A DNA stretch of 19,077 nucleotides from Paraphysomonas bandaiensis (GCA_965644295.1 CBFFRP010000662.1:1-19077), one strand, 5' to 3'. Numbered from the stretch's first letter, positions 2,888-16,619 are shown. Numbers and translations: made by a program. Notes: generated by a model from the letters alone, not told the origin.

Positions 2888-4394
2888 CTAACCCGAGGTA
2901 TAACACCGGGTGCAGCTTATGAAAGACTAAATAAATAAGAAATATGTGAATAAAAAAAGAAAATAAGAAGAGGAATGTGCTTGTTAATAGCCTTACAATA
3001 GCTCAGGCACCCCCAAGCTCTTATAACTGGACACCTCCAACTACGTGTTAAGGTGTAAGGCACAATAACAAAATACTGAACAGCAAGCAGAACACAAAAT
3101 AACTCATAAAGAACCACTCATGTTCTACAAGCTATCTAGAAGCACACAATAACATCTAGAACAATATTCTACAAAAGATTGTACAAGATTTGGTTGATTA
3201 TGTGGACATATCAGTTTTCTGGAACACTCCCGTAGAATGCTATGAAGACCAACTCTAACCAACAGAGTCTCCAGCACACCATAATGAGAATATCGTCCAA
3301 TCATATGCTTGTACTCGACAATATACCGTCACTGTACTATAGACCATATACAGATATACAACAGCACAATACTGTATACTCGGAATCATATACAGCATCA
3401 TACAATCGTATATACAGAGGAGTACAAGGTCTCATACATCCCGCATACCAGAGTAGCATCCAGGAGCATACAGCAAATACAGTAAATACGGTAAATACGG
3501 CATACGACAAAACAACAGTTGAGAAGAGACTGAAGATGATGATGCTCTTAACGCTCATTGCAGATACATGCCAACGCTCCATAACCAGTAAGAGATAGAC
3601 GATGACACTTGGCACACTAGTCAAGTCCATAATGACAGATGTCTGACGCAAGTCACGGCTCCAAACATCATGAACACGAGAAGTTAGAGTCCACTGCACT
3701 CCACAGGAATATGAAGACCACACAGAGTGTACCAATGGCCTCATGACAAGATGAATGGACCCTCAGGTGATACAATGTGTACATATATCATACATACGTC
3801 ATATTCATGTCATGTATACATGCAGATCGTGCTTATGACAAGACTTGGATCTTATACAAGCACGAGCACTATATGCCATACAGTATGCAAGTGATAAGAG
3901 TGTGATGATGGATATAGATGGTGACACACATACATACAGATATATTGGAAGGTATAGATGAATATGTATTCACTACATTGATATCTAATTCCTTCTATCT
4001 GCAGCTAGAGAAGAATCAGTACCAACACAGCATACGGTGTTATAAGTGTGAAGTGTGGTATGTATGCAATGATATATATAAGATGTATAATAATGTATGT
4101 CAAATATGTGTGGTGTGGTGTAATGTATTGTGAATGTAATGTGTATGAGGTGTGAGTGTATGGTATAGGTGATACATGCATAGCACTACTTCAATACACA
4201 TGCCATGATAATAATAATCAGTGCAATCACATAGTGTAGTGTACAAACAAGCATAGATGTAACATAGTATGCATAAAATACAACATATCACCGCTGGTGT
4301 GAGTCACACTCATTCTCGACATCTGTAGTCCATTATATGCCCGCTAGAGAATAGAGAGTACGATGGAATAATAGTTGAACGCCACAGCGTTACA
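2883..4394 (-). mobile_element. LTR of family A, copy 2 (probable 5' LTR), inserted in a gypsy protease gene
   Basis: Inverted copy of 61-1564. Begins TGTAACGC at 4394, interrupting the protease frame after ...LWQFF. Followed by GTAAATTTAC and an ORF. Confidence 0.7.
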
Positions 4395-4889
4395 AAAGAA
4401 CTGCCATAGTTCTCCAAGAATCGCCGGCATACCTATGATGACTTCGTTCTGCAGCATCTCAAGGACAACGAAATCTCCGGAGTATATAATATCTTGCTGT
4501 TCACTCGATATCTTCATGTCTAATTGGATTGTTGTATCACTTTCAAGTCTTGTCTTGTTGTCAGCCAGCCCGATCTTCAAATTCTTTTTAATAATTCTCT
4601 TGTTCTCTAGTTGTTCTCTTATTTTTGTGAAAATTCTCTTACTGATGTAGTTCGCACACAGGGCTCCAGTGTCGAACAAAACTCTAATCTTATCTGATAT
4701 TACACCATTATTATCAAAATTGCTGCTTAACAGCTGTCCATTAAAATGCACCATGTCCGGGGTAGCTTGAAAATTTCTCACCAAATCCCCCACAATGGCA
4801 CATAACTCATGTGGAGGCATCTTCGACTCATCAGGGTTCGCAAGTATGTTTTCATTATCCTGGTGAGTGCCGGAGACGCCTCCTACCAG
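4395..4889 (-). pseudogene. Ty3/gypsy-like retropepsin (aspartic protease), 5' part of pol, truncated by the LTR insertion
   Basis: VLFDTGALCANYIS catalytic motif, flap-like IGLADN and C-terminal EVIIGMPAI. The frame is open from the gag stop (4892-4890) to the LTR junction. Confidence 0.85.
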
Positions 4890-5470: not shown

Positions 5471-6604
5471 TGCAATGGAACTCAGGTTGGGACCTGAGAG
5501 CCAAACTCTAAATAAGCTAAAACTCGCTTTAAGAGAGAGAATGTTGCTTATTATTAACCTATACTACTTCTGCAGTACTAAATGCTTCTCGGCACCCCAA
5601 GAAACTAAAGCACAACTCACCAGCTATGCAGTTCAGTACTAAACAGAAAAGTGACGAGCTACAACAACCAACAAAGAGAGAACAAGCTTAACTAAAAAGA
5701 ATGACGATGCGCTTGAGCGTTGACAGCCACACAGTGACTAAATCCAAATTTTCTGCGAAGGAGTGACGATATTTATGAATATTCTTGGAGAATTCTTCTT
5801 CTTCATACTCTACACATTAATGTATGGACTCTGCCGTATACACTCTCAACTGCTGCTCATCTAAACGATAATGGGCACTCGACCAATCAGCATTGAGAAT
5901 AGGGAAAGCATTGGTTCAGTATTCGCTTCCTGTATTTATACAGTGTAGGGTACAGTATACTGACACCGTATACCTACGAGTGATATAGACGCATACATAC
6001 GATAGAGGAATACTGCAAATACATCATATACAGTGTATACGGTATACAGTGCGGTTGCTGAGAGGAGATGCAGCTCGCTCCTAACTGCCATCTTAATGTG
6101 ATTGCAGCACACATACCGAACATACTTATAAGCGAGCAGATTATCGTGAAAATTGAACAATATGTCCAGAGATGCATTACCATTGTACTCGCTAAAGACC
6201 ACTGCTTCTTCAATTGCCGATATAGAGTACGAGGCGATATAGTATATTGACTGTTCAGCATCAGTACGAGGGTCCACACAGTGTGATGATCAAATGGAAG
6301 GTACCGTAAAATCATGTAATCAGTACGTACAGTCATGACAGGTGATATACAGGTCCTTCTTCCAGACAGAGGCGGTCTATGGCAACCCTTAGTCACCATT
6401 AATTGGAAATGGACATATGCACCACACAGAGGCATATAATAACGGTAAAGAAGCCGCAGACACATCCACTGACTGCAGGAAAAGCACGTATACACTGTTT
6501 ACGTACTATAGGTGATTGTAGAAGCTACATATGTGCATTTACAGGCCACTGGTTGAATATAGAGCCATGTACACATATATACCATATATTAGGGTAAGGA
6601 TACA
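5471..6604 (-). mobile_element. Probable 5' LTR of family B element (distal boundary uncertain, 6604 or ~6644)
   Basis: Ends ...CCATTGCA at 5471 on the minus strand. Shares motifs with the 3' part of LTR A (GAATGT(T)GCTT, GGCACCCC(C)AAG, sub-terminal hairpin, downstream GTAAATTTAC). Candidate TGTAT start at 6604. Confidence 0.45.
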
Positions 6605-6813
6605 ACATATATATATATTCTGTAGAAGGGTCACAACCTATACATATATGTGTGGGTGAAAGAGAGAAACTAGGTTAGTATGTACGCATATATATATGTA
6701 TACATCCAAACTGTAATAATAATAACTCTTCAAAAGAATTATATATCACAGCCCAGCATATAGAATAGAAGATAGTGCTGATGATTATAAACCTGCTTTA
6801 AACCTGCACAGGT

Positions 6814-7177
6814 TTACAGAAAAGTAGATTTATGCTTTTTCTCAGGTTCTTTATTATTATCTCCTAATCCTATTAATCTATTATTCACTTTATTTAATTC
6901 GCCTCGCAATGTGTCTACTTCTCGCGTTAATACACTTGCTCCAGTATTGGGAAAAACACTAGCACCTGTGTTAGAGATCGGTACACCTGTATATTAGAAA
7001 AACGTAGGCTGTAACATAGTCACGCATATTAGGATTATGTTTTATTGGGTCAAAAGCCGCAGCAGTATTGGTCTTTGTCTTCTTTGCTTTCTTCCTCCTC
7101 TTCCTCCTCTTTTTCTTATCATCTTCTTTTATTAGTTTTTTAATATCTTCTATTGTCATTCTGAATTCTTTCACCAT
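6814..7177 (-). pseudogene. Basic (Lys/Arg-rich) viral protein, probably frameshifted or truncated
   Basis: 68-aa ORF (DDKKKRRKRRKKAKK) at 7177-6971. A second frame at 6993-6814 continues with protein-like sequence (NTGASVFPNTGASVLTREVDTLRGELNK). Confidence 0.5.
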
Positions 7178-7216
7178 TATTATAATATAACAAAATAATA
7201 ATAATAATAAAATTAA

Positions 7217-7765
7217 TTAATAAAAATAGTCATGTGGATTAAATGCGGGTTGTTGTCTCACTTGTTGCTTTTGCTTTTGTTTACGCATATGAATATATTG
7301 AATTTCATCCTCTGACTCATCGCTTTCTGTATCGCTCTCTGTCTCACTTTCAGACTCATATATAATTCTTTTTATAGGTTTCTTCTTTGCTTTCTTTTTC
7401 TTCTTTTTATAAATAACTTCCTCTTCTTCGCTCTCACTCTCATTATATTCATTATCATCCTCGCTTTCGCTCTCACTTTCCTCTACTACAGGCTTTTTAT
7501 TCTTCTTCTTCTCTTCTTGTTTTTTTGCCCATATCTCCGCTAATCTTTCCTCCTCTTCTCTCTTCTTTGCTTCTATTTTCTCTTTTCTCTTTAATTGTGC
7601 CTTCTCAAATGCTTTTTTTTGTGCTTCTGAACGTACTTTACGCCTGTTTGGTTTTTCAACTGGTTCTTTTTTGGGACGTCCTACCTTCTTTTTTGTTAAT
7701 GGTGCTTCATCCTCACTAGTCTTAATATTATCTATATCGGATTCGTAAACGTCTTTTTCTTCCAT
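7217..7765 (-). CDS. Highly charged K/E-rich viral protein with an AT-hook-like motif
   Basis: 182 aa with KKKVGRPKK, a helical RSEAQKKAFEKAQLKRKEK segment and alternating poly-K and ESESE tracts. Divergent from the ATPase gene. Confidence 0.75.
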   Translation of the reverse strand: MEEKDVYESDIDNIKTSEDEAPLTKKKVGRPKKEPVEKPNRRKVRSEAQKKAFEKAQLKRKEKIEAKKREEEERLAEIWAKKQEEKKKNKKPVVEESESESEDDNEYNESESEEEEVIYKKKKKKAKKKPIKRIIYESESETESDTESDESEDEIQYIHMRKQKQKQQVRQQPAFNPHDYFY

Positions 7766-7815
7766 GCTTATATATATAAATATAGAAAAAAATATTTTTT
7801 ATAGTATATTATTAT

Positions 7816-8568
7816 ATGCCAAGCAAAAAGAAAAATAAATATAATATAGTTGAAATTAATAATGATTTACCAGAGACAGAGCCGATTAAAGAACATTTCG
7901 GAGTATATATAGATGATATAAACCCAAATTTGCCACGGAGGAATGGGACTATATGGGCTATATGTGGTAAAGGTGGATCGGGTAAGACATCATTATTTTT
8001 ATCGTTGTTTAAATCCAAGAAGTTATTAAGGGCAAAATTTGACGAAGTACATTATATAGTAAATTCTACTTCATTTAATTCGGCCAAAAGCAATCCATTT
8101 AAAGACCATGAAAATATACACCATGAATTAACACCTGACCTATTACACGATATTCATGAGGATGCCTTACAACGACGTGAAGAATGTATAGAAATGGATA
8201 TAGAATGTGAACACACTTGTATTGTAATTGATGATTTCGGAGCTATGTTAAAGGAATATGAAATAGAAAACGCATTAAAGAAAATCATGAATGTTGCGAG
8301 ACATGCAAATTTATATATAGTGTTTATTGTTCAGACCTTTAGAATGATACCAATGGAATTAAGACGTATTTTAACACATGTGACACTTTTTAAACCAAAT
8401 CCTGAGGAATGGAGTATAATAAAACAAGAAATGATTATAGATAATCCTGATAAGTTGGAAGCTATATATAAATATGTTTTTAGTCAGCCTTATAATCATC
8501 TAGACTTATATTTAAAGGAAAATGAGATACGAAAAAATTTTAAATTATTACAAATTGATAGTATATAA
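7816..8568 (+). CDS. A32/FtsK-HerA-family DNA packaging ATPase
   Basis: 250 aa with Walker A GKGGSGKT, Walker B CIVIDD, the ARH arginine motif followed by IVFIVQ, and IPxxLRxxxTH. This is the motif order of Polinton/virophage/NCLDV packaging ATPases. Confidence 0.9.
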   Translation: MPSKKKNKYNIVEINNDLPETEPIKEHFGVYIDDINPNLPRRNGTIWAICGKGGSGKTSLFLSLFKSKKLLRAKFDEVHYIVNSTSFNSAKSNPFKDHENIHHELTPDLLHDIHEDALQRREECIEMDIECEHTCIVIDDFGAMLKEYEIENALKKIMNVARHANLYIVFIVQTFRMIPMELRRILTHVTLFKPNPEEWSIIKQEMIIDNPDKLEAIYKYVFSQPYNHLDLYLKENEIRKNFKLLQIDSI

Positions 8569-8586
8569 TTATCTATTCTTATATTA

Positions 8587-9531
8587 ATGAAAGATTTTTA
8601 TACAAATGAAACTTTTACATATGTGATTGATACAAATAATATGGTATGGGGTGGTGATAACGCCAGCTTTGATTTACCAATGTTAGGCGTATTGCCGTCA
8701 GACGTTGAATATTTTATATGCTGTCCTCTATTTTTTAATTCCACCAGTAATGTGTTATCACAACCTGCTTCTTCAACAATTGTTTTAGAGGCTAAAGATT
8801 TTGTTAATGAGGGATTCAGTACACATAATAACAGCTCCTTTAAAGCAATTACACCCCCTATAATTGCGTCTGAGTTTTCAACACATAGGACAGGATTACT
8901 TAATAATATAAGTAATATGGTATATGTTGTAAAAAACTTTAATAATAAAACTATACGTTTTACCATGCGTAACTGTGAAGGATTTGAACAGGATGTAGTA
9001 GCTAATGGTGGATATAAAAAACACTGGATCTTGTTATTAAGTTTAACACCTATTAGGGATAAGGTTCCAAGATATATAAAAAATAATAGTTCATTTACAT
9101 ATACAATTACTAATTTAAATGCTGTGGGTAGTGCTAATGATTGTTATATTACCTTACCAACGATTAACGATAATTACAATAGCTATTTTGTAGATGTTGT
9201 CAACTTTAAAATAAATGCTGACTCTTTAAATACTGGTCAGTATAGGTATATTAATTTATATGCTTTTGGTTGGGCTGAAAATGGGTATAGTGGTTATTAT
9301 AAATATACTGATAGGATATTAATCGCTGCACCATATATAAAAGTTATTAGCGCTCCCAATTATTTTGCTGGTAATGGATCAGTATTTAAAATATCCAATA
9401 TGAAACAACAGAGATATATACGGTTTAAAATGTATTATCCTTTTATAGGTGAAGAAGTCCCAAGCGGAGATGTTGATAATGGTGAAACAACATATTATTA
9501 TATAACGTGTATTATTAGGGCAATAAATTAA
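8587..9531 (+). CDS. Putative capsid-type protein with two tandem beta-rich (jelly-roll/penton-like) domains
   Basis: 314 aa. Both halves begin FTYxI and contain xGF/Y, (V/I)(K/S)NxxxxxxIRF and a terminal aromatic/hydrophobic strand. Homologous to 9561-10037. Confidence 0.65.
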   Translation: MKDFYTNETFTYVIDTNNMVWGGDNASFDLPMLGVLPSDVEYFICCPLFFNSTSNVLSQPASSTIVLEAKDFVNEGFSTHNNSSFKAITPPIIASEFSTHRTGLLNNISNMVYVVKNFNNKTIRFTMRNCEGFEQDVVANGGYKKHWILLLSLTPIRDKVPRYIKNNSSFTYTITNLNAVGSANDCYITLPTINDNYNSYFVDVVNFKINADSLNTGQYRYINLYAFGWAENGYSGYYKYTDRILIAAPYIKVISAPNYFAGNGSVFKISNMKQQRYIRFKMYYPFIGEEVPSGDVDNGETTYYYITCIIRAIN

Positions 9532-9560
9532 TTTTATTTTCTATAATAATTATATATATA

Positions 9561-10037
9561 ATGGAAAATATGCATAGTTTTACTTATACTATCTCTTCTG
9601 CTAATGCTAATAGTGGAAATGCCGAAGATTGTTATATAGATTTACGACCTTTACCATATAATTATGAGTATTATAATGTACAATGCACCGGCTTTATTAT
9701 GAATTGTCAAAGCATGAACCAGACAACAATGCCTAATTATGTGCATTTAGTAGCAGATGATTTGGCTGAAAATGGTTATTATCAGGGTTTTGATTCTAAT
9801 CAGTGCGTAGTTTCTCATTTATTAACTCATTCTTCAGTGTCACAAATGACTAGCGGCGAAGGTAGCATATTTAGGGTTAAAAATATGCGACAACAAAGAA
9901 GAATAAGATTTAGGTTATATAGTCCTGATTTAACACCATTAAGTGGCGTTGTAGATGATTCCGATACTACATATTGGTGTGTATCACTGTTGTTTAGTCC
10001 AGTTATTACTGAACCTGCAACATTAGAGCTGAACTAA
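9561..10037 (+). CDS. Putative minor capsid (penton-like, single jelly-roll) protein
   Basis: 158 aa, beta-strand patterned. The C-terminal IRFRLYSPDLTPL...YWCVSLLFSPV resembles the end of PLV/Polinton minor capsid proteins. Located near the packaging ATPase. Confidence 0.65.
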   Translation: MENMHSFTYTISSANANSGNAEDCYIDLRPLPYNYEYYNVQCTGFIMNCQSMNQTTMPNYVHLVADDLAENGYYQGFDSNQCVVSHLLTHSSVSQMTSGEGSIFRVKNMRQQRRIRFRLYSPDLTPLSGVVDDSDTTYWCVSLLFSPVITEPATLELN

Positions 10038-11567
10038 ATCTATATGGGTTTTCCAAAATATAGAACCTGAGCCTACAGTTTGAAAATCGTTATATGTATG
10101 AATTTCAAAAGTCCAATTATCAGCAACATCATTTATAGTAAATATTAATGGTGCTAATGTACATCCAACACAGCTAACACTTCCCCTATTCGCGTCCCAT
10201 ATACCAGGACCATAAAGGGTTGCTCTATCCAGTGTACCATTTTGCTTTATTAATACACGTGCTCTTATATCTGTCCATGATTTAATACCCATAATTTCAA
10301 ATGAAACATGCAGCATATAACGCCCTGTATATTGAATATAACCGTTTACATCAATCATATTTGAATCACCACCTGCAGGTGTTGTACTTAGCTCTGATGA
10401 TGTCATATAATGACCGCCAGAGCTTGTTTGATAAGTGGTATTATATGACATGGATGTAAAATAAGTAACTGGGCCGTCTATTTCTTCCCAGTAACATTGC
10501 TTTTTACTGGTCAGTGTGTCTAAGTTTGTTCTATCTGATGATGTAAAGGCTGTGGTTTGTATAGTGGTGTCTGGGAATTCTATTTTTTGATAGCAATTAA
10601 AGTGATCACAACGTATTTCATCTATTGCACCACCTGATACAGCTTTTAAAATTGTGTTGGTAGGATATGACCACTCATTAGATGTACGGGTTATATCGTC
10701 TAACAATGTACTGTAATCTGTACTAAATGCTGTAGCTTGTTCTGTGTTATCTGGGAATTCTATCACGCCGTTCGTGCCTCTAATATCTAATCTACAATTG
10801 GTACCTGTTAATCTCAGTTCAGAGCCTGTACCTGATATAGTATGTAAGCCATAATTTTTATTTAATAATAGATCGCTCGTTATGGTTAAATCATCATAGC
10901 CACCAGAAAGATATGATAAGGGTGTTATAGTGTGTTGTATATTGGATATATCAATGGTATTATTATATATATCAGTCTGCATATCAGTAATATCATTGGT
11001 ATTAATCAATATATCAGTTTGTATATCAGTGATATCAGTTTGTATATCTGTAATATCATTCTGTATATTCATAATGTCAATATCATTGTTATATATAGCA
11101 TTGGCATTTACACTTATATCTGATTGCATGGCTATAATATCAGTTTGTATATCAGATATATCAGTTTGCAAGGTCGCGATATCATCAGCATTAATCAATA
11201 TATCAGCCGTGTTGTTACTTACATCAGTATATATGGCCAATATATCGCTTTCAATCGCCAGTATGTCGCTCTCTATGTCTGCTATGTCATTATCATTATT
11301 CGTTATCTGTGTTTGAATATTATCACTTACATTATTCAAATAGCTTAACTCTATGTCCGATATCTGCACGCCATCAGTATATATATAGGCCCCTGAGTTC
11401 ATGATTATGTCTGTGTCTATGGTTATGTTGTTGGTCTCTATGTTCTGTAGGTATATGTTATTGGCATTAAGGTTGTCTGCTGATAGCTCACCTGTATACA
11501 GCTCGTCTAAATCAAGGCTCTTCAGTCCGTTTATAGTGGAATACTGTACGGTATTTATTTGGTTCAT
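10023..11567 (-). CDS. Fibre/spike-like virion protein with a trimeric coiled coil
   Basis: 514 aa with the ELSYLNNVSDNIQTQI fibre-type motif, 17 heptads of DIxx(I/N)xx, two IEFPDxTxQxTAF repeats and a beta-rich C-terminal head. Confidence 0.75.
   Translation of the reverse strand: MNQINTVQYSTINGLKSLDLDELYTGELSADNLNANNIYLQNIETNNITIDTDIIMNSGAYIYTDGVQISDIELSYLNNVSDNIQTQITNNDNDIADIESDILAIESDILAIYTDVSNNTADILINADDIATLQTDISDIQTDIIAMQSDISVNANAIYNNDIDIMNIQNDITDIQTDITDIQTDILINTNDITDMQTDIYNNTIDISNIQHTITPLSYLSGGYDDLTITSDLLLNKNYGLHTISGTGSELRLTGTNCRLDIRGTNGVIEFPDNTEQATAFSTDYSTLLDDITRTSNEWSYPTNTILKAVSGGAIDEIRCDHFNCYQKIEFPDTTIQTTAFTSSDRTNLDTLTSKKQCYWEEIDGPVTYFTSMSYNTTYQTSSGGHYMTSSELSTTPAGGDSNMIDVNGYIQYTGRYMLHVSFEIMGIKSWTDIRARVLIKQNGTLDRATLYGPGIWDANRGSVSCVGCTLAPLIFTINDVADNWTFEIHTYNDFQTVGSGSIFWKTHIDLVQL
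10932..11288 (-). repeat. Degenerate 21-bp coding tandem repeat (17 heptads)
   Basis: The protein reads DIADIES DILAIES ... DITDIQT DITDIQT ... DISNIQH. ATATCAGTTTGT recurs in the DNA. Confidence 0.85.
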
Positions 11568-11634
11568 TATATATTATGGTACATATTTTTTTACTTGATA
11601 AAATAAGTACATTGTACTGCATTGTACAGATAAG

Positions 11635-11663
11635 TTATACAGTGTGATATAGACACTGTATAA
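11635..11663. other. Perfect 11-bp stem hairpin in a viral intergenic region
   Basis: TTATACAGTGT-GATATAG-ACACTGTATAA. Confidence 0.6.
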
Positions 11664-11761
11664 ATAAAAAAATAGGTTTATATTATAATAAAATTCTCAA
11701 TTCGTTCGCGGACATTTCCAAGAAAAAAAAAGCCGCGTGAACTGTACTGAGGTCGTCATAC

Positions 11762-12538
11762 TCAGTTCGAACCCCAGTAGGGCCATTTTGCACAATTTTT
11801 TTTTTGTTTTTTTAGCCATTTGATGGCCTTTGATACAGATAAACGTATAGGTGTGAAGCATAATGTTAAAGTCCAATACGTTTGCTTCGTAACACCATCT
11901 AAAGGTTTTAAGTCTTCACTATCAACCAATTTAAAATTTACCTTTCTTGTCTGTCCTGTGTTCTTGACTCTGAACCCTCTGTTTTCTTCTAGTTCTTCAT
12001 GTGTAGAACGTGTATTAACACCAGTTTCCAAACAACAAACAACACATTTATTTCCTTTTAACATATAACAGTTGGAATGGTCGCCGAAATTTTCTGATAC
12101 CAATACTATATTATACGGTATTGTTTTCTGGTCCATGCTTTCACAATTCAAATAAAATGATTTACATTGTACATTATAATAATCGCAATTTTCATAGGGC
12201 AAAGGACCTAAAATAATATTACAATCTCCCGCAGATTCGCCTTTATTATTAACTGATGAAAACACATAGGTAAAGCTTTCATTCATTGCCATTTTATACC
12301 TTGTGCGTGTTTTTTGTATTTCATCCCCCAAGTAAAACGAATGCTGAAACCGGGGATCAAATCTACGTTCATCAATCAAACCGAGTAAATCATCCGAATC
12401 TGAATTTTCACTGTCTAAATCCGCGTCTTCTTTATATATTGGTATCATGGTATGACTCGGTATATAGGATGTTTCATAATCATATTTTGATTCTGGCACT
12501 TCTGTTAATGTTGTATTGTTTATATAGATATTGTTCAT
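11762..12538 (-). CDS. Third penton-like paralogue with an acidic N-terminal extension and basic tail
   Basis: Residues ~85-232 align with the 158-aa protein (SFTYxxSSxN, DCxIxLxPLPY, YYNVQC, NCxSMxQxTxP, NxCVV, FRVKN, DLxPLxGV, TYW). Confidence 0.7.
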   Translation of the reverse strand: MNNIYINNTTLTEVPESKYDYETSYIPSHTMIPIYKEDADLDSENSDSDDLLGLIDERRFDPRFQHSFYLGDEIQKTRTRYKMAMNESFTYVFSSVNNKGESAGDCNIILGPLPYENCDYYNVQCKSFYLNCESMDQKTIPYNIVLVSENFGDHSNCYMLKGNKCVVCCLETGVNTRSTHEELEENRGFRVKNTGQTRKVNFKLVDSEDLKPLDGVTKQTYWTLTLCFTPIRLSVSKAIKWLKKQKKNCAKWPYWGSN

Positions 12539-12573
12539 TATATAATATGTGTTATATAATAATTTAAAATTAA

Positions 12574-12747
12574 TTAAAGCTTTTTCTTAATTCTTTTCTT
12601 CACAGATGTAGCCTTTTTGTTTATCTTCTTAGCTACTTCTTTACGTTTGTTCTCTGCATGCTTTGTTACGTCTTGTTTAGCTTTGTTTACTGTTGCTCTC
12701 AAAGCTTTATTAATCAGTTTGTTTACTTGTGCTTGTTTCTTTGGCAT
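12574..12747 (-). CDS. Small basic protein (57 aa), possible DNA-condensing core protein
   Basis: MPKKQAQVNK...KKRIKKKL. The ATG at 12747 has the same TATATATG context as neighbouring genes, so it is preferred over 12801. Confidence 0.6.
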   Translation of the reverse strand: MPKKQAQVNKLINKALRATVNKAKQDVTKHAENKRKEVAKKINKKATSVKKRIKKKL

Positions 12748-12891
12748 ATATAATAAGTGTATATATTTTTTTACAGGATAATAGGGAGTAAAATACGGCA
12801 TGTCTATATATAGGGTAGTTAGGTCTGTTGTTCCGTCTATCTGTTGTAATTGTTCGGTGTTTAAGTCAGGGTTGGTATATCGTTTGTTAAT

Positions 12892-13171
12892 AGGGTCGGT
12901 TGATCGTTGAGGTTAAAGGGTCGGTTGATCGCTAGGGTTAATATGTATAGTATTATTTTATTTTGATTGCATTTTTTTTGACATTTTTGTTGAAAATATT
13001 TATTTTGGAATTTATTTTTTTAGAAAAAAGTTTTTTTTTAAGAAAAATGTTGTAAAAAATGTAGTGTATACTGTTACAGAATTTGTGAAAATAAGATTTT
13101 TTTTGCATTTTTTATTGTGAAAGGTGACACTACATTTTTTATGTAAAAAAGTGTATAAAAAAATGTAATGT
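12892..13171. repeat. Non-coding direct and inverted repeats near the right end of the viral island
   Basis: AGGGTCGGTTGATCG at 12892 and 12917. Perfect 15-bp inverted pair TAAAAAATGTAGTGT (13053) / ACACTACATTTTTTA (ends 13141), plus a degenerate extra copy near 13156. Confidence 0.75.
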
Positions 13172-14573
13172 ACAATATTGGAAGCACTTGTACGTGATAC
13201 ACAGCGATACCATAGGGGTAAGGGTCAGTATAAATTAATAGTTTTCATGGTCACGGTTAACACGGCTAGGGTTGAAACCCCCCCCCCCTCTCTCTGTGTG
13301 TGTTTAAAGTATAGTATTATTAATATTATTATATAAGATAATTATTATATTTAAAGATAGAGTGGAAAGGAAGAGTAATAAAAGGAATGTTTTATTACGA
13401 TACGGAGAGCCCTTCTGGCTCAGGAAGAATGCCTAAGCGGCAAGAGCGTCCCTTGCTTCCTTCCGCCTCGCTGTGTGTCTCCTGCTTGTTGACAGCCCCT
13501 ACACTGGTCAGTGTCTTAACAAAACCCCGCCGGACGCAGAAGTGAACGAGTTCCCAGTTGCAGTGGCATCATAGCTCACGTCGGACATGATGGCCGCACC
13601 GCTTTCGTCCGTCCACGCGGTATGGCCAGTATAGCTACGACTGGGGTCTAACCCTCTTTCTCACTTGTCCTTGGCTCTAAAAGACAGACATTTCATCATA
13701 AATACATATGCTCCGACAGAAAAGAGTTACCTGAAGACCACTCCTCGACAGAAATCTGTATAAACGCATAGATAGACAAAAGTAGCTTCCTGAGGAGCAT
13801 TCTTCGAGATATATTTTGCTCTCAGCAGTGCAGGTTCACACTGCATAACTGCGCAACCTTGAACCAATTAAAACCATTATTGAGGTCAACATCAGATCCA
13901 TAACTGTCTTTCGACTGTGCTTTTGCAAATTTAGCTGCCTGGAGCTTGTCTATGGCGTCTTGTCGGTTCTCTTCTCGTATGCTTTTGAAGTCATGCAAAG
14001 AAGTCACTGAAAGAACACATATCAGACATTATTCAAAAACAAGTCGTAGGAATTGCACAGCACTCGTATATGTGAGAGTCCATCTGTATACAAACCTTTT
14101 AAGATCTTCATGATGAAAATTCAATGTAGGGATTTCGATCAATGGGGCCGGATGTGAGGGGTACTCGATGAATTGGAACGATATAGGAAACCTTGCGATA
14201 TTGAAAGAAGCAGTAAATGAAATGAAAATCTGATTGCATATTCGTGTCCAGTGGTCCATGATTGCCATAGAATGATAAGTCTCCAGTGTCGGGTCAGTTC
14301 AAGTGTTGTGTTAATAGTATTTCAATGTCACTGAAGCGAGATAAACGTATGGGCAGCCAGCATCTTATTTTTCGGGAATTAATTGAAGTAAATATTCTCT
14401 ATATTACTGCAATACAACTACGGCTGGAATACAGATAATTGTTGTTTCAATATTAGAGGCATCTTTGAACAAAAATATACAAAGGGTGCCGATACGAAAA
14501 TGAGAGTTTAGAACGACATTTTTGGACTTTTGATCAAAAAACGGTTGTTCGGACTTTTGACGCCGGCTAGCTG

Positions 14574-14747
14574 GGAGACTTTTTTCGACAAAGCGGACCA
14601 GTCTGGTCCCACTTTATTTTTTTGTATTGTGTTTTTTCGTATGGAATATGAGTGTAGAGCTTTGAAATTGTGGTCAAATTTATTTCAAGTGGGACCAAAT
14701 ACAGTCCGACAAGTGGAGGGCTGGTCCACTTTGTCAAAAATGTCTCC
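14574..14747. mobile_element. MITE-like foldback element
   Basis: 27-bp terminal inverted repeats with 3 mismatches (GGAGACTTTTTCGACAAAGCGGACCAG / CTGGTCCACTTTGTCAAAAATGTCTCC), plus an inner pair TGGTCCCACTT / AAGTGGGACCA. No clear TSD. Confidence 0.6.
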
Positions 14748-14945
14748 TGGATCTATTACTCACCAGCAACACCATACATACCTGGTCACTCATCATCACC
14801 ACTTCTATAGTTCCACACCATTTTGGTGTACGGTACCTTCCACATTTTACAGAAAAGAACATCCTCCATCTTGTGTTTGATTTCTCTTCGCAGCATCTCA
14901 TCAACAGAAGAAACAAACATCCATCTACTGAACAATGCGAGCTGA

Positions 14946-16619
14946 ATGATGAAGCTCAGAACCACCCCGCGCAGTACGCTGGCATTAGCTTGTCGACGCA
15001 ATAAGTCTTGTCGATTTCTTTCCATTGACACCAACCTCATCAAGGGGAACCTGGGTAAGTTCTCCCCGGAAGCCAGCGACGACCAGTCCGATTTCCTCGA
15101 GGGCTTGGCGAACTGTCGAGTTGAAGCCATTGGGGATGGCATCGATGTAATTCATATTGATAACAAGTTGGGAGTGCCATGGAAATGCTTGGGCCCACAG
15201 AAGTTGTTTGTAAGGGAGTTTTATCCTGACTTGTTGAGAGAAATAAGGAAAAATGACAGAAGTGTTCTCATTGGAAACCCTGGGATTGGCAAATCCTTTT
15301 TCCAGTATTATTACCTGGCTCGAATACTGAATCCGTCTTTGTTCGGGCCCCTTCCTCCTGACTGCTACGACTCCACCACCCCGCCGAAGATAGTCATCCG
15401 CCAGGTGGGCACTGCTACCATGACTATATTCGACATTGCCAATCGCCAAGCAGAGAGAGTTGTTGGTTGTCTAGATTCACTTCTAGACTGTTTTGATCCA
15501 GAAACGTCATTATATTTGATGGAACCTGGTAAAGCTGTGGTGGAACCCCATTTTGAAGGCCTTCGCATTCCCACTTTGGCCACCGTATCTCCGAATCCGG
15601 CCCGATATAAGGAATTCTGCAAGAACGGAGGAGCAGCACTGTACATGCCTGTTTTCACTCTTCCGGAGTTGCTTGCGATTGGAAAGTATTTGCTGGAGAA
15701 CGAGCATGTGCCGAAGTTGCTGCAGCCGGAGTATTCTTCTGAGCAGATCACGGAGCGCTTTCGCCGATTTGGGGGTATTTTCCGCCATGTGCTGCCGATA
15801 TCTCTCACTTACCTTCGTATGTGTCAACGTAGTCAGTCCAAGGCAATAGGTTCGTGTAATGCACATGCACTCCTGGTCTCCTTCGATGTTGAGGATGCGG
15901 ACGTCAGTCATTTCATCATGCAATATGACGTGGACAGGGATGGCAAATTCCCCTTTTACGAATATCGTTTGAACTTTGTCAACGAATCCGTCGCATCTCA
16001 AGTTCAAGATAAGCTTAACGAGTCCTCTCTGAAGGACAGGAGATCAGCGCTGATTCGAAATGACGAGACAGGATTTATGGCGGATGCATCTGCTAAGATC
16101 TATGAAAGTGTCATTGCGGATCAATTGACATCTGCTCTTGGCGTGCGATGGAGAAAACGGGAAGTGATGGCCAGCTCAGAGGGGAAAGTAAGTGAATGGT
16201 CCGATTTCTCGTTGAGGTTGAATGAAGCGGTTAAGCTGCACCCTCCTCCGTTCGAGGAAATGCGGCCACTGGTGCTCTACGTGTCTTCGAATCCGACCTT
16301 TCCATTGGCTGAATACATGTACAAGACGGAGCAGGGGGAATTGGTTATGTTTCAGGTCACCAGAAACAAGTCCCCAAAGAAGATTATCAAGGGGAGTGCT
16401 TTGAAGCAGTTATTGGACAAGATTAAACTTCCCGTCGACAAGGTATCGCTGCTGAGGTTAGTTCTCATCCCATTGCCGTCGCTGGCACAAAGCGCACGAT
16501 TCGAAGTAGCCGAGGACGACAAGAAGATCCTAATGAATGCGGCGCTGGAAAATGGTTATGAAGTCTGGCATATTCCCACAGATTATTCGAGCGATTTCGC
16601 GAATGAGAAGGAACTATAG
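14946..16619 (+). CDS. Crinkler/RHS-like protein: P-loop NTPase plus C-terminal restriction-endonuclease-like domain
   Basis: 557-aa intact ORF with LFVREFY, GNPGIGKS, SPNPARYKEF, YMPVFTLPEL, FGGIFRHV, SHFI, YE, NPTFPLAE and FQVT. This motif series is typical of CRN/RHS NTPase-REase C-termini. Confidence 0.8.
   Translation: MMKLRTTPRSTLALACRRNKSCRFLSIDTNLIKGNLGKFSPEASDDQSDFLEGLANCRVEAIGDGIDVIHIDNKLGVPWKCLGPQKLFVREFYPDLLREIRKNDRSVLIGNPGIGKSFFQYYYLARILNPSLFGPLPPDCYDSTTPPKIVIRQVGTATMTIFDIANRQAERVVGCLDSLLDCFDPETSLYLMEPGKAVVEPHFEGLRIPTLATVSPNPARYKEFCKNGGAALYMPVFTLPELLAIGKYLLENEHVPKLLQPEYSSEQITERFRRFGGIFRHVLPISLTYLRMCQRSQSKAIGSCNAHALLVSFDVEDADVSHFIMQYDVDRDGKFPFYEYRLNFVNESVASQVQDKLNESSLKDRRSALIRNDETGFMADASAKIYESVIADQLTSALGVRWRKREVMASSEGKVSEWSDFSLRLNEAVKLHPPPFEEMRPLVLYVSSNPTFPLAEYMYKTEQGELVMFQVTRNKSPKKIIKGSALKQLLDKIKLPVDKVSLLRLVLIPLPSLAQSARFEVAEDDKKILMNAALENGYEVWHIPTDYSSDFANEKEL

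Follow-up and report, generated by a model that had tools for sequence, protein, structure and literature searches.

Introduction

Among the DNA viruses of aquatic protists, Polinton-like viruses (PLVs) belong to the most abundant. To our knowledge, neither a particle structure for the clade considered here nor an account of the vertex and attachment machinery of these viruses is available. A stretch of 19,077 nucleotides from Paraphysomonas bandaiensis (GCA_965644295.1 CBFFRP010000662.1:1-19077), hereafter called the window, encodes one domain of about 150 aa in four copies distributed over three intact genes, namely p314 (two copies), p158 (one) and p258 (one). The locus raises the question of what a penton-like domain that occurs in tandem within one chain may contribute to a virus particle. 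A first-pass annotation had proposed that the two-domain protein is a duplicated penton or, alternatively, that a penton domain has newly given rise to a major-capsid-like protein. Here, these proposals are considered together with the predicted fold, the family architecture and the gene neighbourhood in related viruses.

The viral island

The window contains a low-GC island of 6.8 kb (about 6600-13400), with a G+C content of about 30% as compared to about 40% in the flanks (composition profiles). Similarity to related viral contigs is confined to this island in an HMM and tblastn comparison of the whole window, and the island is a partial PLV within eukaryote-like DNA. The virus clade features an NCLDV-type major capsid protein (MCP), an A32 ATPase, a protein-primed polymerase and a retroviral-type integrase. 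An intact A32-type genome-packaging ATPase of 250 aa (7816-8568, plus strand; Pfam Pox_A32, 2e-15) is 40-44% identical to the ATPases of the relatives L001, L014, L019 and L021, and p314 lies directly downstream of it, as had been annotated. This ATPase-to-p314 junction is kept in an independent marine contig of 95% DNA identity. All seven island genes are preceded by a TATAT element (upstream-sequence comparison).

Further genes are found towards both island ends. The gene of a 182-aa Lys/Glu/Ser-rich protein (7217-7765, minus strand) matches a 194-aa gene of L001 in position. Next to it, a remnant gene (6820-7177, minus strand) is recognised by a single tblastn segment to a 373-aa protein of L001 (E 1e-4), a homologue encoded two genes upstream of the ATPase in relatives. 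The remnant, of which only about 50 codons can be recognised, is cut once by the island edge and probably carries one frameshift as well. At the opposite end, a gene call for a 75-aa Lys-rich protein with no assigned role (12574-12801, minus strand) is followed by an AT-rich non-coding stretch with short direct repeats (12802-13400; repeat search and composition). This stretch, which includes a 25-nt tandem pair at 12892-12941 and repeats of about 45 nt at 13031-13179, may be the terminal region of the element. No terminal inverted repeats joining both island ends were found in the repeat search.

Of the PLV morphogenetic module (double jelly-roll (DJR) MCP, mCP and A32 ATPase), the window carries the ATPase only. 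No capsid gene was detected across all 19 kb by HMM and tblastn searches, in agreement with the annotated absence of a visible canonical MCP from the island. Additionally, neither a DUF5901-like penton-candidate gene nor polymerase (pPolB/helicase-primase) or integrase (rve/tyrosine recombinase) genes were found in the window. Since the element is incomplete, the window copy is probably unable to form particles by itself. Possibly, the window's own lineage has no capsid gene, as is the case in the window itself.

Four copies of one domain and an adjacent fibre gene

The two-domain protein p314 (8587-9531, plus strand) carries its N-terminal domain, D1, at about 8602-9057 and its C-terminal domain, D2, at about 9082-9525 (HMM envelopes). 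Its single-domain partner p158 (class S; 9561-10037, plus strand) carries the domain at 9561-10004 (HMM). In p258 (11762-12538, minus strand), the domain (11843-12292) is placed between an acidic leader of 82 aa (12293-12538) and a basic tail (11762-11842). The leader is probably translated, because its first ATG carries the TATAT element common to the island genes.

In pairwise BLASTP, p158 and p258 are 42% identical over 150 aa (E 6e-34) and the C-half of p314 matches p158 with 37% identity (E 1e-28). The N-half gives E 1e-5 against p258 and E 2e-4 against p158. Compared directly, the two halves of p314 have no significant likeness (BLAST E 0.025 over 27 aa) and share 18% identity in the alignment; as far as sequence can tell, they are connected through the family alone and not by direct similarity. 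The family HMM finds both halves in p314 as well as in the two-domain proteins of relatives (9e-23 and 3e-42 in L008; 1e-15 and 2e-16 in L001), and it finds no fifth copy in the window. BLASTP and HMM thus confirm that the same domain occurs twice in the 314-aa protein, alone in the 158-aa protein and with an acidic leader in the 258-aa protein. The shared motifs quoted in the first-pass annotation are found in full in p158 and the C-half of p314; the N-half and p258 have them in part only. Moreover, the domain genes look functional and are under purifying selection, with a dN/dS of about 0.3 relative to a marine metagenome contig of 95% DNA identity.

A 514-aa fibre-like protein is encoded at 10023-11567 (minus strand), and the 3' end of its gene overlaps that of p158. 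Its N-terminus, of moderate conservation, is followed by heptad-type repeats (DNA 10936-11391, spaced 21/42 nt in the repeat search) and a C-terminal domain. It matches the trimeric coiled-coil fibres UspA1 and P22 gp26 weakly and a PHROG minor head protein with 2e-7. The large C-terminal domain is the variable part of the protein (82% vs 44% identity pattern) and would be expected to form the receptor-binding part. Wherever a locus extends past its two- or three-domain gene, as in the window and seven others, a fibre homologue adjoins that gene. The single-domain member of L021 has no adjoining fibre gene.

The domain family and its relatives

The family is small, with 87 representatives among 1.84 billion proteins searched. 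No Pfam or PHROG model was found for it, and there is no Pfam match at E <= 1. Its chains contain one domain, two domains and, in one case, three, the last (P0048 of L023) being a fusion of a p158-type domain to the two-domain protein. Orthologues of p314 include P0043-P0052 and others. In the tree, D1 domains, D2 domains and the partner single domains (S) form three separate clades, so the duplication is old, and the proposal that p314 was newly built from a penton domain is not borne out. A further, diverged S-type copy is represented by p258.

The family is found solely in the structural gene block of PLV contigs. Gene maps place its members within the morphogenetic block in the window and in L001, L014, L019, L020, L021, L023 and L025, and every sampled clade genome has at least one member adjoining capsid or fibre genes, including genomes with a single-domain member only. 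The full module (MCP, mCP and ATPase) is present in L001, L014 and L019-L021; pPolB and rve are found in L019, and rve also in L007 and L021. All six related lineages that have a multi-domain member and enough context (L001/L026, L014/L015, L020, L023, L025 and L013) encode a conventional MCP of 436-476 aa (Pfam Capsid_N), as do L019 and L021. Three of these six, on contigs reaching that region, also encode a conserved 244-aa penton candidate (Pfam DUF5901), to which the penton role is assigned from gene position only. In L013, whose module is 70% DNA-identical to the window, and in L023 and L025, a major capsid gene holds the slot that p258 occupies in the window. With p258 in the capsid slot and both a canonical capsid gene and the penton candidate absent, the lineage of the window may differ from its relatives.

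Predicted fold and likeness to pentons

Confident AlphaFold monomer models were obtained for p314 (pLDDT 84, pTM 0.87; two sandwiches, each with 9-10 beta strands) and p158 (pLDDT 85.6; all-beta, 9 strands). The models point to an 8-9-stranded beta sandwich of the jelly-roll type as the fold of the domain, and p314 is predicted to consist of two such sandwiches in succession, as supported by the HMM hits to both halves. In Foldseek, p158 matches mostly jelly-roll proteins, and its top match by TM-score, of moderate strength, is chain 6ncl_a6 (TM 0.50/0.48, probability 1.0). By length alone (167 residues), this chain fits the penton P1 of PBCV-1 (a310l), which has 170 aa and is ordered from residue 2 to 168 (PMC6344570). 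Non-penton jelly rolls follow by a small margin, including a TNF-like Pgp3 domain (0.39-0.45) and nucleoplasmin (0.38/0.51), and further fold matches are a cucumovirus coat protein and MAM, Eph and CBM domains. The modelled size and fold of p158 fit the compact single jelly roll of about 150-250 aa expected of pentons.

A link to the penton candidate of relatives is provided by profile comparison. The DUF5901-like 244-aa family aligns with the p158 family in hhalign (probability 91.7%, E 8e-7, 83 columns) and, more weakly, with the two-domain alignment in the same region (40%, 3e-4). In the control, comparison of the domain family with the clade MCP yields a probability of 1%. This single moderate profile-profile match suggests that the DUF5901-like protein is distantly related to the domain. 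Taken with the fold model and the best match by TM, assigned to P1, it supports the description of a duplicated, penton-like jelly-roll domain.

The same approaches lend no support to p314 as a major-capsid-like protein. The p314 model does not superpose in Foldseek on DJR MCPs (TM <= 0.19), whose two rolls lie side by side in solved capsomers. The alignment TM, normalised to the query, is 0.16-0.19 with P3 of PRD1/PR772, 0.17 with a Megaviridae MCP and 0.15 with the capsid protein of SGIV. Furthermore, Pfam and hhalign comparisons revealed no likeness of p314 or the domain to Capsid_N, Capsid_NCLDV or the clade MCP. The separate MCP of the relatives likewise counts against the capsid reading, and a conventional MCP of this kind is what the first-pass annotation itself had named as reducing the case to penton paralogy. 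In view of this MCP and the failed superposition, a self-similar DJR capsid protein is an unsupported reading of p314.

Possible roles of the domain proteins

The reading preferred here, with moderate confidence, is that the proteins are diverged minor virion paralogues of the penton type, not the shell protein, and together with the fibre would form a vertex or host-attachment complex. It builds on observations of how the domain is repeated and folded, how the chains of the family are organised, which genes adjoin them and that relatives have a separate MCP. From these we infer the vertex location, the fibre partnership and the stoichiometry. D1 and D2 of p314 and S of p158, three old and non-equivalent classes, would act as one 1:1:1 set, since one relative fuses them in one chain. 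Most likely, this set would join the adjacent trimeric coiled-coil fibre in the complex, where jelly-roll layers, stacked or mixed, would lie on or beside an ordinary penton by analogy with the STIV turret and the PR772 vertex. A more specific arrangement, in which D1-D2 and S either enter the five-fold vertex alongside two penton-candidate copies or are stacked on it as a turret, is a tentative and rather improbable suggestion. We know of a mixed vertex documented so far only in the bacterial tectivirus PR772 and of a stacked turret only in the archaeal STIV. If the specific arrangement were true, a eukaryotic PLV would resolve the mismatch of a trimeric fibre on a five-fold position by dedicated penton paralogues.

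Other roles have to be weighed against this proposal. The proteins could be the five-fold pentons themselves while the DUF5901-like protein does something else, with homopentamers in genomes limited to a single-domain gene and mixed pentamers in those with the two-domain gene (e.g. two p314 and one p158, five jelly rolls in all). The minimal penton as top TM match, the constant adjacency to capsid or fibre genes and the purely positional assignment of the DUF5901-like protein speak for such a role, which we consider unlikely. With at least 416 matches vs 87 representatives, the DUF5901-like protein has a far wider distribution, and it holds the usual ATPase-penton-capsid position in relatives; moreover, a three-domain fusion would not readily tile a five-fold ring, and the long-kept distinction of D1, D2 and S is more in keeping with three fixed places than with five equivalent ones. 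Alternatively, D1, D2 and S might form a three-fold, receptor-binding fibre head or collar outside the shell (a TNF/C1q-like pseudo-trimer) with no five-fold role. Three non-equivalent domains per genome, fused once in one chain, would suit this, as would the adjoining trimeric fibre, the matches to the trimeric TNF-like Pgp3 C-terminal domain and to ligand-binding Eph, MAM and CBM jelly rolls, and the pTM of p314, which suggests tight D1-D2 packing. However, the fibre has its own large variable C-terminal domain of the kind expected for receptors, the sole sequence-level relative of the domain is the capsid-module DUF5901-like protein, and single-domain-only genomes exist, so that a fibre head appears distinctly doubtful.

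The remaining two explanations are much weaker. Beta-sandwich proteins unconnected with virions (e.g. secreted, lectin-like), resembling pentons through fold convergence, would account for the many non-viral jelly rolls that Foldseek returns at similar E-values and for the absent Pfam/PHROG annotation. The restriction of the family to the structural block, the profile link to a capsid-module protein and the promoter-like element common with neighbouring virion genes make this very unlikely. Lastly, p314 might have taken over as shell protein in the window's lineage as a minimal self-similar DJR MCP. The size range of the smallest known DJR capsid proteins includes 314 aa, the window has yielded no capsid gene, the place upstream of the fibre gene is taken by p258 instead, and the ATPase-p314 junction recurs in the marine contig. 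Nevertheless, a conventional MCP lies beside p314 orthologues in all six lineages, including L013 with its module of 70% DNA identity, and TM to DJR MCPs is low. The absence of a capsid gene is best explained by incompleteness, because the island spans just 6.8 kb, has no replication or integration genes and carries a truncated gene at its edge. Such a takeover is therefore extremely unlikely.

Comparison with known systems

Several viruses offer parallels to the proposed vertex or host-attachment complex. P1 (A310L) of PBCV-1, to which the best TM match of p158 is assigned, is a minimal eight-stranded jelly roll of about 170 aa without an insertion domain, although its sequence similarity to the window domains is undetectable. 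PBCV-1 has two strongly diverged penton paralogues, P1 and P1v1 (about 10% identity), at different vertices (PMC9617893). Unlike in PBCV-1, up to four domains occur per element here, two or three of them fused, and their five-fold place is putative. In the turret of STIV1, A223 with two jelly rolls and C381 with three form pentamers stacked on the vertex, the upper layers of which bind the host, and this virus also has a separate DJR capsid protein and an A32-like ATPase (PMC10551542). The pattern of one-, two- and three-domain chains described here is analogous in architecture only; STIV A223 and C381 were absent among the fold-search matches listed and from PDB sequence searches. STIV1 also differs in being an archaeal virus without a trimeric fibre, and stacking would be hypothetical here.

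At the vertex of PR772/PRD1, P31 and the P31-like domain at the N-terminus of the trimeric spike P5 form a 3+2 heteropentamer, which in PR772 resolves the mismatch of three-fold on five-fold symmetry (PMC6750898). Similarly, the present family has three distinct penton-fold domains, found together with a trimeric fibre and with a penton candidate encoded separately. In PR772, however, the extra jelly roll is inside the spike chain, whereas the fibre here has no such domain, and this bacterial virus has no sequence relation to the family. Within PLVs, some members ('Trimcap B') are reported to have two mCP copies (bioRxiv 10.64898/2026.06.19.733378). The mCP genes belong to the same virus group and structural gene block as the window family, but the passage on these copies mentions no tandem two- or three-domain fusions or fibre linkage, and the copies need not belong to the window family. 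As to DJR MCPs, p314 resembles them in its two predicted jelly-roll-type sandwiches per chain beside an A32 ATPase and differs in its lack of profile similarity, its low TM and the genuine member that relatives encode separately.

Significance

The family supplies no intermediate form that would link single with double jelly-roll capsid proteins. What it adds is a previously unannotated group of proteins in which a predicted jelly-roll penton domain has been duplicated and fused, giving chains of one, two or three domains, and has persisted in three distinct classes next to a fibre gene. The family may represent a counterpart, in a eukaryotic virus, of the vertices that STIV and PR772 build from several jelly rolls, and for the host-recognition vertex of PLVs it is a concrete candidate open to testing.

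Organization of the island

The viral genes of the window are confined to a low-GC island of about 30% G+C, which the composition profile places at roughly 6600-13400, within ORF-poor, eukaryotic-looking surroundings of about 40% G+C. The island contains seven intact genes and one remnant. The remnant (6820-7177, minus strand), on the left margin of the island, carries one truncation and probably one frameshift, with about 50 codons recognisable. It is followed by genes for a 182-aa Lys/Glu-rich protein (7217-7765, minus), an A32-type packaging ATPase (7816-8568, plus; Pfam Pox_A32, 2e-15), the two-domain protein p314 (8587-9531, plus), its single-domain partner p158 (9561-10037, plus), a 514-aa fibre-like protein (10023-11567, minus), p258, which bears a fourth copy of the domain behind an acidic leader (11762-12538, minus), and a 75-aa Lys-rich protein (12574-12801, minus). 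Beyond the last gene extends an AT-rich, repeat-bearing stretch with two 25-nt tandem units (12892-12941) and a pair of AT-rich repeats of about 45 nt (13031-13179). At 13279-13305, just inside the jump to about 55% G+C, a C-run gives way to CT/GT dinucleotide repeats. These repeats and the C-run/dinucleotide tract may represent a virus terminus or an integration junction at the right end of the island. A repeat search of the window found no inverted repeat linking both ends of the island, and an Rfam scan of the window gave 0 matches.

The viral copy in the window is incomplete and arranged differently from its relatives. Genes for a major capsid protein (MCP), the DUF5901-like penton candidate of the clade, a polymerase, and an integrase were not detectable in any frame of the whole 19 kb. 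The junction between the ATPase and p314 is no accident of this copy, as the Tara Oceans contig L024 has the same junction at 95% identity. Outside the island, the right flank holds an intact 557-aa ORF (14946-16619, plus) with a P-loop (Walker A) motif in a stretch of 45-49% G+C; it has no Pfam match and presumably belongs to the host or to another mobile element. The left flank has a weak, below-threshold match to a retroviral-type aspartyl protease (4344-4820, minus; Pfam RVP_2, E 0.004), which hints at a decayed retroelement.

Upstream of each of the seven island genes (window 7200-12815), TATAT stands no more than 14 nt from the ATG, extended to TATATA in five. Within the island the background rate of TATAT in windows of this size is 10%, which makes the binomial P about 1e-7. 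Judged from the sequence, TATAT looks like a promoter-type element common to the island genes and unusually near their start codons. Its presence at all seven genes backs the assigned start codons; that of p258 is the first ATG, so the acidic leader of the protein is supported as well.

Sequence evidence for the repeated domain

The four domain copies are connected by pairwise BLASTP to different degrees. The strongest likeness is between p158 and p258 (E 6e-34), followed by the C-terminal half of p314 against p158 (E 1e-28), whereas the N-terminal half of p314 matches p258 and p158 more weakly (E 1e-5 and 2e-4, respectively). The direct likeness of the two p314 halves is not significant (18% identity), and they are joined through the family only; the family HMM detects both halves in every two-domain relative. 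The same HMM found no fifth copy within the window. A comparison with L024, which shares 95% DNA identity across window 8489-9941, puts dN/dS at about 0.3 for p314 as well as p158, indicating that both genes are under purifying selection.

When 1.84 billion representative proteins were scanned in full with HMMER, the family amounted to 87 matches at E <= 1e-3. Shorter and longer kin were covered, as the scan was unrestricted in length and was combined with per-domain HMM matching. Counting in close cluster members, the family comprises about 99 single-domain proteins, 18 two-domain proteins, and one three-domain protein, P0048. The latter combines p314-type and p158-type genes in one reading frame (L023, 104-1501, plus; 465-aa frame), a fusion seen on one contig only that could be a sequencing artefact removing a stop. 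The very long matches P0064, P0125, and P0126 were rejected as bacterial Ig-like or IQ-repeat false positives without a full-length domain match. In a rough neighbour-joining domain tree, the N-terminal domains of the two-domain proteins (D1), their C-terminal domains (D2), and the partner single domains (S) together with the third domain of P0048 form three separate clades. Thus, the set of two plus one domains is old and its three members are non-interchangeable. Other two-domain fusions (P0105; P0066/67/69) have independent origins, and p258 forms a separate branch resembling the single-domain class.

Scanned against Pfam and PHROG, p314, p158, and p258 matched nothing, and an exact-match query with the p314 of the window found no recorded protein. 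Sequence and profile searches of the PDB with the p314 family, the p158 family, the DUF5901-like family, and the clade MCP gave noise only. Among IMG/VR viral contigs, the p314 alignment turned up 276 pattern matches, none of them a true relative, and the same alignment found 0 loci in metagenome contigs; scanning the metagenome contigs with p158 relatives found two.

Relatives and their gene neighbourhood

All relatives are metagenomic, many from Tara Oceans marine samples and several others from JGI samples. The longer contigs represent a Polinton-like virus: L019 encodes a protein-primed polymerase, an rve integrase, an A32 ATPase, and a structural block, and rve is also found in L007 and L021. 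In L001/L026, L014, and L020, the block runs in the order ATPase, short ORF, 244-aa protein, Lys-rich protein of about 150 aa, MCP, fibre, two-domain gene, and single-domain gene, with the last two in L020 encoded on the other strand, convergent with the fibre. In L023, L025, and L013, the two- or three-domain gene and the single-domain gene come first, and the fibre and MCP converge on them from the opposite strand; the gene of about 150 aa after the MCP is seen only in L025, and L013 ends within a 24-codon ORF matching the MCP C-terminus. L019 and L021 each have no more than a single-domain member, again next to the MCP or fibre. Split genes occur in L014, where one frameshift divides the DUF5901-like gene into two pieces, and in L020, where two breaks leave the MCP in three; these may be assembly errors.

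The first-pass annotation had raised, as one of two options, p314 as a self-similar double jelly-roll shell protein. This is not borne out, since relatives with p314 orthologues carry a separate conventional MCP. An MCP of 436-476 aa, inside the 400-600 aa range named there for a separate capsid protein, is present in all six lineages that have a multi-domain member and enough context, and Pfam Capsid_N was matched in four of five (best 1.4e-6, above the curated cut-off). The MCP position of L013, L023, and L025 is occupied in the window by p258 and the 75-aa gene. The 75-aa protein was considered as a shortened form of the Lys-rich protein preceding the MCP in relatives, and this was unsupported.

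The 244-aa protein has at least 416 relatives, and some members match Pfam DUF5901 above threshold. Of the lineages with a multi-domain member, all three with contigs extending into that part of the genome carry it (L001/L026, L014, and L020). We infer from gene position alone that DUF5901 is a penton family; no literature on DUF5901/PF19254 and no solved relative were found. By hhalign, the DUF5901-like family matches the p158 family over the C-terminal 83 columns (probability 91.7%, E 8e-7) and, more weakly, the two-domain alignment in the same region (40%, 3e-4), whereas the clade MCP as a control reached a probability of 1%. According to these scores, the repeated domain is probably a diverged paralogue of the conserved penton candidate rather than of the jelly rolls of the capsid protein.

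Two further features of the relatives were recorded. The protein of about 150 aa is Lys/Gly/Ala-rich, conserved without a family match, and always located between the DUF5901-like gene and the MCP (L001 5773-6228; L014 5405-5872; L019 10758-11204; L020 2339-2785; L021 10770-11237); it could serve as a minor protein of the virion, either internal or membrane-associated. Additionally, L021 (GCA_054404035.1) encodes a DVNP-type (dinoflagellate/viral nucleoprotein) protein (3124-3330, minus) and an integrase with a chromodomain (1709-2749, minus), a hint that the host range of part of the clade is dinoflagellate-associated.

The adjoining fibre

A fibre homologue adjoins every multi-domain gene in contigs extending past that gene. 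The fibre contains heptad-type repeats and weakly matches trimeric coiled-coil fibres; in the window, a run of 21/42-nt periodic repeats at 10936-11391 (minus) encodes heptad-like units. Across relatives, the N-terminus is moderately conserved and the central repeats and C-terminus are variable. The C-terminal 304 aa of the window fibre are 82% identical to those of L008/L013 as against only 44% for the N-terminus, a pattern that suggests modular exchange within the fibre. A phage-tail Collar domain (Pfam PF07484) is part of the L019 fibre (12714-14864, plus), whose likeness to the window fibre is confined to the N-terminal ~110 aa; this fits a conserved capsid-attachment end with swappable distal parts.

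Predicted folds

AlphaFold models were built with family alignments and compared by Foldseek. p314 is confidently predicted as two beta sandwiches (pLDDT 84, pTM 0.87) and p158, likewise with confidence, as a nine-stranded domain (pLDDT 85.6, pTM 0.81). The Foldseek matches are almost exclusively jelly-roll proteins. The top TM-score for p158 is to chain 6ncl_a6 (TM 0.50/0.48, probability 1.0), taken as PBCV-1 penton P1 on the match in length alone, since its 167 residues fit the ordered region 2-168 of the 170-aa a310l product (PMC6344570, supplementary table). Further jelly rolls follow at no great distance, among them a TNF-like Pgp3 domain, a cucumovirus coat protein, MAM domains, and nucleoplasmin. 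With the penton top-scoring and other jelly rolls near, "penton-like" is the best but non-exclusive reading. For p314, no global match was found among solved or predicted structures; it reaches TM 0.21-0.25 with two-jelly-roll enzymes and 0.15-0.19 with double jelly-roll capsid proteins. The observation itself is real, and the more cautious proposal of a duplicated penton-like domain is upheld.

Possible roles in the virion

The domain is a repeated jelly roll, it belongs to a small dedicated family of one- to three-domain proteins, and its placement in the virion block is constant. We lean towards p314, p158, and p258 being accessory parts of the vertices, where they would act with the fibre. 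A trimeric fibre accompanied by three fixed domains of penton fold that are not equivalent to one another recalls two known assemblies. The STIV turret stacks pentamers of A223, which has two jelly rolls, and C381, which has three (PMC10551542), and the PR772 vertex is a 3+2 heteropentamer of the penton-like domain of the spike and the true penton (PMC6750898). That the proteins are the pentons themselves is possible and distinctly less probable. In its favour is the top structural match of p158, the chain taken as the PBCV-1 penton; against it stands the DUF5901-like penton candidate of the clade. One virus, PBCV-1, keeps two very different pentons (PMC9617893), and two minor capsid (penton) protein genes are described for some Polinton-like viruses in a 2026 preprint (bioRxiv 10.64898/2026.06.19.733378).

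A three-fold fibre head is a little more doubtful again; the fibre is the steady neighbour of the multi-domain genes, and the hhalign link leads to the penton candidate. It is improbable that these are beta-sandwich proteins outside the virion; non-viral folds such as nucleoplasmin do score near, and against this reading stands the fixed position in the virion block. Least credible is a new self-similar capsid protein in the lineage of the window. No MCP is detectable in the window, the complete virus may have one at another place, and the p314 model scores poorly with double jelly-roll capsid proteins. What keeps its interest is a set of penton paralogues that is linked to a fibre, structurally plausible, and without annotation, in an abundant and structurally unexplored group of viruses.
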